From positions 520,558 to 584,557 of the forward strand of contig NIVC01000172.1 in the NCBI GenBank assembly GCA_002269645.1: 64,000 bases of DNA, written 5' to 3'. This DNA comes from Macrostomum lignano. Lineage: Eukaryota. Below, piece after piece: positions 44,001 to 55,722 of this stretch (the first letter of the stretch is position 1; each line of letters opens with the position of its first letter). The translations under genes and the position numbers were made by a program. A model generated the notes under the pieces. It was not told the DNA's origin. It was given only the letters and a program-made list of their open reading frames with translations, and ran no database searches.

Positions 44001-47000
44001 AAGTGGCAAGTCACCCCAATTATCAGCCAACCCCTTCCCTTGACCAAGCGGCAGTCACCCCAATTGTCAGCTAAACCCTTCTCTTGACCAAGCGGCAGTC
44101 ACCCCAATTGTCAGCTAAACCCTTCTCTTGACCAAGCGGCAGTCACCCCAATTATCAGCCAACCCCTTCCCAACTCTGTATATATGCAAGTGAAATAATC
44201 AACACAAAAATTGAACACGGTCTTAATATCTAAAGAAAATGCCCAATTATAGGGAGACTGATTTATTTATGCAGGCCGCAAGATATTTCTAATGACCGGC
44301 ACCCAAAATTCGTGTCTCGCATTAAGCAGGCACTCCGAACTCCGGGTGTTAAGGATCAAGATTAGTTCAAAAGCTCGGCCACTGGACCAGCCTCCCTTGC
44401 GGCACTAACGATTGCAAAATCCAACCCGGATTTATGGAGTTATCGGCAGTGGGAGGGGGAAGAGAAGAACGCTAAGCATGTCGCTTTTAGCTCCCGTACC
44501 GAAAGTATCGAGTTTCCCAGCCCCGGAGCAATTTTCCATTATTTCTGCTTCGGGGCCGACTTTGCAATCGCTCGCATAGCATTTTCCTAAAGGCTGCAGC
44601 TTAGAAAGAGATGCATGATGAAGAAAGAGGCTGAGTTACAGTCTTTCAGACGGCATTAGGCTGACGCTGCTAGGAGGCTAAAGCCTAACTGAGGGACCCC
44701 GGCACTTAGGGAATCTAAGGAGCGGCCCTGCAGCATCCCACTTGGCTGCAGGTGCAATTCTTGACTACTTAGGCTGATTGATTCGTTCGTTGAATGGGAG
44801 AGCCCAGCAAGATGGAGCGGGAGATGCTGGGAGGAATTGCTTGATAAAAAAGCGCAGCTCCAGGCCGGGTCATAAAATCCCACAAAGCCAACAAGCCGAG
44901 GATTAACCCGCGGCCCAGTCGTGACAGTGGTTTACAACCTCAGTAAGTTGAAAAATGACCGCCACTGCAATGTCCAAGAGCCTACAAAATATGCTATTGA
45001 TTTGGGGAATTTAAAAAAATAAAAAACCCCGACTCTTTGGAGCAATTCATGACTAATTGCTGCTTTGCGCAGTAAAACTCCGTCCAGGCCTTTTTGGCGC
45101 CACTCTGAGCATAGCTGGGGTGTGCAAGTATACTCAAATCTCTACTCACCAACATAAATGAGAAAGGCGGTCAGTTGTCGTGTCCGGTACTGCAGGCTGA
45201 TGGCGTCCGAGCGCCCGGACAGACCCGGCTGGCTGCTCACGTTCAGGTAGATGAAGCCCAGTCCGTTGAATGTGGTGGGGAACTCGTGCTTGACTGCGGC
45301 GTGGGGTTGGGGGTGGCGGAGGTTGCAGCTCATCGGTTTCTTTAGTTTAAAATGCAGACAAGCAGAGACATGACAGTCAGTCAACAAAGACCGGTGGACA
45401 GACAGACAGGCAGGCAGACAGACAGACAGACAGACAGACAGACAGACAGACAGACAGACAGACAGACAGACAGACAGACAGACAGACAGACAGACAGACA
45501 GACAGACAGACAGACAGACAGACGCACAAATTCAGAAGGCCAATATGCAATGGAGCCAGAATCTCCGTGACCGTGACCAGAGATAAATTAGAGAAGGAGT
45601 CCATAAGCAGCGCTCCTGATCACGGGACCAATATTATACCCCCATACCGGTACCCCACACTAATTTTGCGCCGAAGATCAAAGTACAGCAAGAGCGCTTG
45701 AATTTGCGCCAGTCGGGCTGCGCAAGCTGCCGGCTTATCTGCCGCACTCTCCCGCCCCAACACCCCCGCCGCTCTCTCGCCAATTCACGGCTCCCTCGGG
45801 GGTTTCTCACCGCGCGTAGCTCCGAGCGAGCGAACCAAGCTGGCCTCCCGCAGCCCTTGCAGAGGCAGCGGCGGCGGCGGCTCTCGGCTCCAAGGCTGCC
45901 CCCAATTTCCCTTCCTAGGCCGGCAGAGGCAGAGAGAGAGAGAGAGAGAGAGAGAGAGAGAGAGAGAGAGAGAGAGAGAGAGAGTCCAACTCACAGAGTG
46001 ACCTCTGATAATGGCAGCTGGGTGAAGGAATTAAGACCGCACTGAGGGAGGTTCGACACCTCGAATCTCGGGACCGCTGGAGTGTGTCCGGCCGGCATTC
46101 TGGACCCCCTCCAGAAGCTACAAAGTTTGGACAGCCGCTCAGCTCAACAGCTAGAATTGGACATCTTTATTATAAATTGATTGATGAGGCGAGAATTAAA
46201 ATCCGTCCCAATTTGGCAGACAACTACGCGCTCGTAACTACCTTTTTTGTTTGCTAATCCTGCAAAACTGCATGTGGCTCTGGATGGTAGAGCTCTGAGG
46301 GTGGGCAGCTGAGAGATGAAGAACGGGCGGGCGGAGCACGGGGGCAGCGGCTGAGGACTCAGGAGGCCATCCTCAGCAGGCAGTGATGGATACACGGCGG
46401 GCAGGCCTGCAGCTTCTCCATTTTCCGCATGGATTCAACAGTTGGAAATGGGATGGGGACAGACAGACAGACAGCCGGAGGGGAGAAGAGAGAGACAGTT
46501 AAGGCCGATTTCAAAATCAGCCTGGTAGGTCAGACGGAGGCTTCAGTCAAGCGTTGTATCAGGACTTCTCTGGGTCTCCTGCGCAGCTGCTCAGTTGTTC
46601 TTATTTTAGTGCAGCTCAGCGGCTGGAGTGTCTGTTTTCTTTTACTTTCGGAATGGCTCTCTCGCATCTACTTTAGAATTCAACTCCAGGCCTGATTGAT
46701 TGGTCCGCTAAGTCTGAAATTCGATTTAAAAACTGTCTAATTGTATTTTTTGTTACTTTAGACTGGCGGTTCCACAGCGAGTTGGGATTTGCGTGTTGTA
46801 CGTGTCTTCGTGTGTCTTCGTGTCTTCGTGTCTTCGTGTCTTCGTGTCTTCGTGTCTTCGTGTCTTCGTGTCTTCGTGTCTTCGTGTCTTCGTGTCTTCG
46901 TGTCTTCGTGTCTTCGTGTCTTCGTGTCTTCGTGTCTTCGTGTCTTCGTGTCTTCGTGTCTTCGTGTCTTCGTGTCTTCGTGTCTTCGTGTCTTCGTGTC

Positions 47001-55722: not shown

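Follow-up and report, generated by a model that had tools for sequence, protein, structure and literature searches.

Neurexins are grouped into alpha, beta and gamma forms, which are treated in reviews as promoter-defined classes, the alpha and gamma forms being present in invertebrates (PMC10084454; PMC12665717). Their diversity is ascribed in reviews to these promoters together with splicing, and extensive isoform diversity is regarded as a trait of vertebrates (PMC12665717). Vertebrate beta-neurexins are expressed from an internal promoter, and their private first exon, which encodes a signal peptide and a short unique stretch, is spliced to a shared LNS exon (PMC10084454; PMC12665717). In the literature, no description of a neurexin form starting at LNS2 and no paper on the structure of flatworm neurexins was found. 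Here, a neurexin gene of the flatworm Macrostomum lignano was analyzed, which is located on the minus strand of contig NIVC01000172.1 (assembly GCA_002269645.1, positions 520,558 to 584,557). This whole stretch of 64,000 nucleotides is called the window, and all positions refer to its first letter as position 1. The window most likely carries one of the two alpha-neurexin genes of M. lignano, with its 5′ end cut off by the window boundary. In the explanation favored here, to which a probability of roughly 55% is assigned, the alpha exon lies outside the window and positions 55722–55551 form a real internal first exon. With moderate confidence, this segment is regarded as a genuine alternative first exon inside the intron before LNS2.

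The proposed isoform is similar to the beta-neurexins in having a private first exon with its own signal peptide, which is joined to a shared LNS exon. The beta-neurexins start before LNS6 and contain one LNS domain, whereas the proposed form would start before LNS2 and comprise five LNS domains along with two EGF domains. In the beta-neurexins the unique N-terminal stretch is His-rich; in the exon of the window it is Cys-rich. With the gamma-neurexins (C. elegans nrx-1 gamma and mammalian NRXN1 gamma), the proposed form shares an internal start within the alpha gene; the gamma-neurexins, which are known in invertebrates, are devoid of any LNS or EGF domain. The features of a private first exon, namely an own ATG, a signal-peptide-like start and an in-frame splice, are all present in the sequence, and the assignment to an intron depends on an upstream exon deduced from a second neurexin gene described below.

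The gene of the window was assembled from stop-to-stop listings of open reading frames (ORFs) and runs from 45293 to 7593 in 13 exons, all of which are bounded by consensus splice sites. The spliced exons yield an in-frame protein of 1300 residues with the domain order LNS2-LNS3-EGF2-LNS4-LNS5-EGF3-LNS6, followed by a transmembrane helix and a tail ending in KEWYV. In this model, Pfam detected five Laminin_G stretches, one EGF domain (residues 431–461) and a Syndecan-type transmembrane segment and tail. Using blastp, residue 8 of the model was found to align with residue 251 of two oyster neurexins (including neurexin-1) and with residue 290 of fish neurexin-2a, which corresponds to the start of LNS2. 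From there a single collinear alignment each was obtained, covering model residues 8–1098 against oyster residues 251–1237 and model residues 8–1118 against fish residues 290–1319. For this reason LNS2 was assigned as the first domain in the window, and the most 5′ domain-bearing exon (45150–45293) does represent the start of LNS2, as had been stated in an earlier interpretation made from the letters alone (hereafter the sequence-only reading). The ordered LNS2-to-LNS6 ectodomain of an alpha-neurexin is therefore present and collinear with known neurexins. Compared to the canonical alpha-neurexins (oyster neurexin-1-like and fish neurexin-2a), the protein is 27–28% identical and collinear from LNS2 to the cytoplasmic tail, whereas nothing in the window corresponds to their first 250–290 residues or so (signal peptide, LNS1 and EGF1). 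The single transmembrane helix and the short tail with a class II PDZ-binding motif (EYYV/EWYV) are present as well; the tail, in which KEWYV is directly followed by the stop codon, is of the same style as oyster and annelid tails.

The candidate internal first coding exon (55551–55722, minus strand) is 172 nt long and encodes 57 residues from an ATG to the donor TGCG/gtgagt (slashes mark junctions). It ends in phase 1, which is the phase of the acceptor at 45293. Its predicted layout consists of a basic n-region of 25 residues including seven Arg, an h-region of 14 residues and a c-region of small residues (VCG/DG). The sequence-only reading had pointed out this phase-compatible ATG exon with its basic n-region, hydrophobic stretch and CCPCCDC cluster, and all of these elements are found. 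A blind filter was set to accept ATG-initiated ORFs of 18 to 120 residues that have a phase-1 GT[AG]AG donor and contain a 12-residue stretch with a Kyte-Doolittle mean of 2.0 or higher. With both strands included, only two loci of the window passed this filter, the segment 55722–55551 and one at 28.5 kb, so that the former is the sole match upstream of the LNS2 exon. The filter also recovered the annotated signal-peptide exon in both copies of the second neurexin gene. Three other loci were returned in 368 kb of strand sequence, which corresponds to about 0.15 matches expected by chance in 18.7 kb; taken alone, the result for 55722–55551 is suggestive but not decisive.

The 5′ flank of the ATG (55723–55747, minus strand) contains the hexamer CTTCAG twice, at 55740–55735 and 55731–55726, and upstream of these an acceptor acag/ (AG at 55747–55746). 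The spliced leader (SL) trans-splice acceptor motif of M. lignano is [T/C]TNCAG (PMC8629364), which is fitted by both hexamers as a match of the motif alone. Judged from the sequence, an SL joined at either CTTCAG would bring the terminal ATG of the leader into the frame of the exon. Addition of the SL directly at the 45293 acceptor was rejected, since the leader ATG would be read as ATG TCA AGC, off the LNS2 frame, with a stop after 17 codons. The CCPCCDC cluster is located in TGC/CTG-rich DNA, and the frame is still Cys-rich beyond the donor (CGECGEC). No Pfam family matched the cluster, and nothing comparable was found in the corresponding exon of the second gene. The Cys-rich N-terminal cap suggested in the sequence-only reading is thus real as a sequence, but we advise against assigning a function to it.

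The second gene provides the closest comparison. A0A1I8GWM6 (UniProt, M. lignano), the exons of which match the window with 98–100%, was the only database protein covering LNS2-LNS3 in the homology search. With this protein, a HMMER search against 1.84 billion representatives identified PAA86589.1 (BOX15_Mlig002077g3, M. lignano), which is 47% identical in LNS2 and in which LNS2 begins at residue 26. Its N-terminus is MRRRAASEIAAAALLLCASVAAVTN/LREETPTTFDGRGFIYLDLSS, with the junction MRRRAASEIAAAALLLCASVAAVTN/LREETPTTF; by its sequence, this start is predicted to be a textbook signal peptide directly before LNS2. PAA54791.1 (1417 residues, 5′-partial) belongs to the same 90% cluster and the same gene, and starts with ...FEKALQGQLRNIVYADC...CSGDPCRNGGVCLADDDPDDRRCRCQEEFDGGRCEN/LREETPTTF, which corresponds to the end of LNS1 and EGF1 spliced onto the same LNS2 exon. 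The model of the window gene is 46% identical to PAA54791.1 (from its residue 105 to the end) over 1300 residues, with the same exon boundaries, and PAA54791.1 was therefore classified as an old paralog of the window gene. The BOX15_Mlig annotation relies exclusively on RNA-seq data and assembled transcriptomes (StringTie, TACO, TBONE, TransDecoder; PMC5730564), so that both N-termini of the paralog reflect assembled transcripts.

The DNA of the paralog was examined in two copies, L001 and L002. PAA54791.1 joins ...CRCQEEFDGGRCEN to LREETPTTF, and in L002 this exon ends at 10312 with the donor AAATC/GTGAGA. Upstream of the LNS1 end and EGF1, L002 encodes in shifted frames MLLWFLAAAAASVASTAA and the beginning of LNS1 (51% identity to LNS1 of oyster), and the joined translation gave a Pfam Laminin_G_2 match with an EGF domain in the expected place. 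As read from these frames, the signal peptide, LNS1 and EGF1 of the paralog make up a single exon, which is about 0.8 kb long and contains frameshifts of the assembly. To be read through, this alpha exon (L002 9500–10312) needs at least two frame changes, which explains why PAA54791.1 is 5′-partial and starts in the middle of LNS1. The LNS2 exon of L002 starts at about 27600 after CCTGCAG/TTCGCG (TT of the split Leu codon at 27599–27600), which gives an intron of 17.3 kb. The internal signal-peptide exon lies inside this intron at 23039–23114, with the donor AAATC/GTGAGT in phase 1 like the alpha exon. In L001 it was found at 10001–10076, 6.5 kb before LNS2; no LNS1-EGF1 was detected in the 10 kb upstream of it, resulting in an intron length of more than 16.6 kb. 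The paralog thus shows that a signal-peptide exon in the intron between EGF1 and LNS2, joined to the acceptor of LNS2 in phase 1, genuinely occurs among the neurexin genes of M. lignano.

In the paralog, the same bases, AAATC/GTGAG, are found at the ends of the alpha exon (L002 10306–10317) and of the internal exon (L002 23108–23119), and both isoforms consequently have Asn-Leu at the junction. The shared end could be a coincidence or a trace of the origin of the internal exon. Furthermore, PAA54791.1 contains six extra residues (DKQEIL, residues 218–223) within LNS2, which are missing from PAA86589.1. By sequence, these look like an alternatively used micro-exon, the position of which is reminiscent of vertebrate splice site 2; extensive splicing of neurexins is described in reviews as vertebrate-specific.

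Compared to the paralog, the window gene has the same exon boundaries, the same transmembrane segment with the KEWYV tail and an alternative signal-peptide exon candidate in the intron before LNS2 that is in phase 1 to the LNS2 acceptor. The two exons differ in their details. The exon of the paralog, which encodes 25 residues, has a short n-region (MRRR), lacks a Cys cluster and is located 4.5–6.5 kb from LNS2, whereas the exon of the window encodes 57 residues with an n-region of 25 residues and the CCPCCDC cluster at a distance of 10.3 kb.

For the LNS1-EGF1 part, the region upstream of LNS2 was searched by several methods. Pfam returned no family at E ≤ 5 for non-repetitive minus-strand ORFs of at least 28 residues between 45,294 and 64,000, the retroelement being left out. 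Using tblastn with LNS1-EGF1 (the first 250–290 residues) of two oyster and two fish alpha-neurexins, only downstream LNS and EGF exons were matched, and the closer LNS1-EGF1 of the M. lignano paralog likewise matched only downstream LNS and EGF exons in the window. The absence of an LNS1 or EGF exon between 45.3 and 64 kb, as noted before from the sequence, was thus confirmed by Pfam and tblastn, and the part of an alpha-neurexin from signal peptide to EGF1 is missing from this interval. The 18.7 kb of the window upstream of 45293 include about 6.4 kb of tandem arrays and an LTR (long terminal repeat) retrotransposon of 3.6 kb, which together amount to about 10 kb, so that over half of the region consists of repeats. 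In the paralog, the corresponding exon is located 17.3 kb from LNS2, which is about the reach of the window. If the window gene is built like the paralog, its alpha exon is expected at least about 17 kb upstream of 45293, and at a greater distance on account of the additional repeats and the transposon. By this comparison, the first exon of the canonical form, with signal peptide, LNS1 and EGF1, would be located upstream of position 64000.

Several points weigh against the explanation favored here. The upstream LNS1-EGF1 exon of the window gene is deduced from the paralog rather than seen, and the use of 55722–55551 at this locus is predicted only, as opposed to the transcript-derived exon of the paralog. 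Between the two signal-peptide exons no alignable sequence was found, and a DNA comparison of the upstream region of the window with both paralog loci gave nothing alignable either, so that the homology is positional only. The n-region of 25 residues is unusually long. The existing database models are divided. A0A1I8H049 (388 residues), a cluster mate of A0A1I8GWM6, joins CCPCCDC/VKHEFPTTF, which is the junction of 55551 to 45293 proposed in the sequence-only reading, and makes use of the acag/ acceptor in the flank. This model lacks a start Met and is composed, in its 5′ portion, of retrotransposon integrase (60872–60525) and an ORF at 59.6 kb; it resembles an ab initio chain more than a cDNA. 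It does not provide independent evidence because it is built on the same splice and coding signals. The sister model A0A1I8GWM6 splices a different exon to 45293 (45996–46067, minus strand; 72 nt, 24 residues, donor CTCT/gtgagt, phase 1). The frame of this exon is without an ATG or a domain match, and it is probably an ab initio or untranslated-region exon. On this evidence, it is unlikely, though worth weighing, that the gene has the alpha form only, with 45293 joined solely to an EGF1 exon outside the window and 55722–55551 being an ORF that arose by chance in intron DNA rich in GC and in TGC/CTG and was picked up by gene predictors and the sequence-only reading alike. The background of 0.15 matches is not negligible, the only model that uses the segment is chimeric with a transposon and the second model prefers another exon, the Cys cluster runs on into the intron frame as it does in low-complexity DNA, and a Pfam family match is lacking. 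Against this, the paralog has a transcript-supported signal-peptide exon with matching intron, phase and acceptor, which raises the prior for such an exon in the window gene, and the segment shows the full n/h/c layout, a perfect G/GTGAGT donor and two SL-acceptor motifs directly before the ATG. We therefore consider it fairly probable that the exon 55722–55551 is real. The undescribed internal-promoter isoform put forward in the sequence-only reading is upheld to the extent that the paralog has a transcript-derived exon with the same intron, phase and acceptor and that A0A1I8H049 contains the junction; for the window gene itself it holds by analogy and as a prediction.

The sequence-only reading had also considered a five-LNS neurexin without LNS1-EGF1 at the level of the gene. 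A true five-LNS gene, with LNS1-EGF1 lost from this paralog and translation starting at the 55722 exon only, is quite improbable. Nothing like LNS1 or EGF1 is present in the 18.7 kb upstream, but with the alpha exon of the paralog at 17.3 kb from LNS2, its absence within a repeat-swollen intron of this length is uninformative; an empty, repeat-rich 18.7 kb is what an ordinary alpha gene would show, and a gene-level loss is thus unsupported. A protein search with LNS1-EGF1 of the paralog returned no second M. lignano protein, which also speaks against an alpha exon of the window gene; as the protein of the paralog itself was not returned either, being hidden in its cluster, this negative carries little weight. 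In the trematode Dicrocoelium dendriticum, CAH8572605.1 likewise consists of a signal peptide, about 45 residues and then LNS2, and is collinear with the paralog from residue 113. This gene extends over 151 kb, and it is just as likely that its first exon was missed. No other flatworm was among the further short matches named in the HMMER search. The five-LNS gene is most likely an artefact of the window edge: an N-terminal module missing at the edge of a window, in a genome with repeat-filled introns of more than 15 kb, is no evidence of domain loss. Least probable of all is a decaying or silent copy, that is, a non-functional duplicate in a partly polyploid genome, the 5′ structure of which would be without consequence. 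It is suggested by a C-run in the second LNS2 exon (43480–43261) at about 43451 (43445–43455), where the window has CCCC (ttgCCCCattg) and both UniProt models imply CCCCC; the run being one base short, a frameshift and an in-frame TGA result in the window copy, which counts against a functional gene as favored here. In addition, no transcript-derived (BOX15_Mlig) protein of the window gene was found in two homology searches covering LNS2-LNS3. A full-length homology search returned molluscs and vertebrates only and no M. lignano protein, but low-complexity words probably dominated it, so that absence cannot be concluded from this search. Apart from the short C-run the 13 exons are open with consensus splice sites, the UniProt models derive from another assembly with an intact C run, and a similar frameshift in the expressed alpha exon of the paralog, also in a long-read assembly, points to a homopolymer error of the assembly. 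The deficit is probably such an error of the long-read assembly, although it could be a sign of a disabled copy.

Under the explanation favored here, namely an alpha exon outside the window and a real internal first exon, the intron before LNS2 would have been enlarged by tandem arrays (about 6.4 kb) and by the retrotransposon (3.6 kb). Transcripts containing the exon 55722–55551 would begin at an internal start or receive the SL as a cap at one of the two CTTCAG acceptors, and the signal peptide encoded by this exon would be connected to LNS2 through the phase-1 acceptor at 45293. The predicted product is a neurexin anchored in the membrane, with five LNS domains and two EGF domains. This short isoform would retain every ligand surface of LNS2 to LNS6 as well as the intracellular PDZ link and would lose only LNS1-EGF1, comparable to the larger losses in beta- and gamma-neurexins.

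The individual exons of the gene, all on the minus strand, are distributed as follows. LNS2 is encoded by a first exon at 45150–45293 (phase-1 acceptor ccgcag/TCAAGC, donor ATGTTG/gtgagt), a second one at 43261–43480, which carries the frameshift and the TGA in the window copy, and a third one at 39124–39273; the end of LNS2 and most of LNS3 follow at 34532–35106, and the end of LNS3 with EGF2, which was detected by Pfam, at 32082–32386. LNS4 starts at 27929–28155 and continues behind an intron of 11.5 kb with its middle part at 16343–16457, while the end of LNS4 and most of LNS5 are located at 12520–13265. The end of LNS5 and EGF3 (12036–12315) are followed by the three exons of LNS6 (11197–11390, 10930–11095 and 8970–9316). 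The last exon (7593–8024) encodes the stalk, the transmembrane helix and the cytoplasmic tail ending in ...KEWYV and the stop codon, and includes the Pfam match to the Syndecan-type transmembrane segment and tail. Its acceptor choice is uncertain, and the paralog has one additional small exon before the corresponding exon. The 11.5-kb intron (16343–27929), which divides LNS4, is the largest inside the window and is full of minisatellites; a unit of about 0.6–0.9 kb recurs in it at about 18.5, 19.4, 20.0 and 20.8 kb.

The retrotransposon in the upstream intron is of the Ty3/gypsy type (60080–63720) and has the orientation of the neurexin gene, that is, the minus strand. It contains a gag ORF (63505–62981) and an ORF of 887 codons for reverse transcriptase, RNaseH and integrase (63176–60516), and is apparently intact. 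The LTRs are short (60090–60175 and 63549–63634) and 99% identical over the 86 nt compared, which makes the insertion look recent. The downstream LTR faces the exon at 55.7 kb and could in principle give rise to read-through transcripts. A (CTAT)n microsatellite was found twice, with 181 copies at 56341–57064 and at least 70 copies at 63722–64000, where the window ends inside the array. The two arrays flank a block containing the retrotransposon, and this block may have been inserted into one array or duplicated with it. Just downstream of the neurexin 3′ end, a Helitron-type element is located on the minus strand (2–2784). Its ORF at 2784–868 showed a Pfam match to DUF6570 and a weak otubain-like match, and the ORF at 886–2, which runs off the window, matched Helitron_like_N and a replication protein.

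For flatworm neurexins in general, it is tentatively proposed, at somewhat less than even odds, that an internal first exon between EGF1 and LNS2 is conserved and defines a "short-alpha" class consisting of a signal peptide and LNS2-LNS6. If this is true, the short-alpha form would occur in both Macrostomum paralogs, which diverged long ago, and possibly also in trematodes (CAH8572605.1). It would represent a fourth promoter-defined neurexin class besides alpha, beta and gamma, and invertebrates, too, would adjust the neurexin ectodomain via the choice of the start site. It would also be a natural experiment on the contribution of LNS1-EGF1. Since M. lignano is amenable to transgenesis, the short isoform is testable in this animal.

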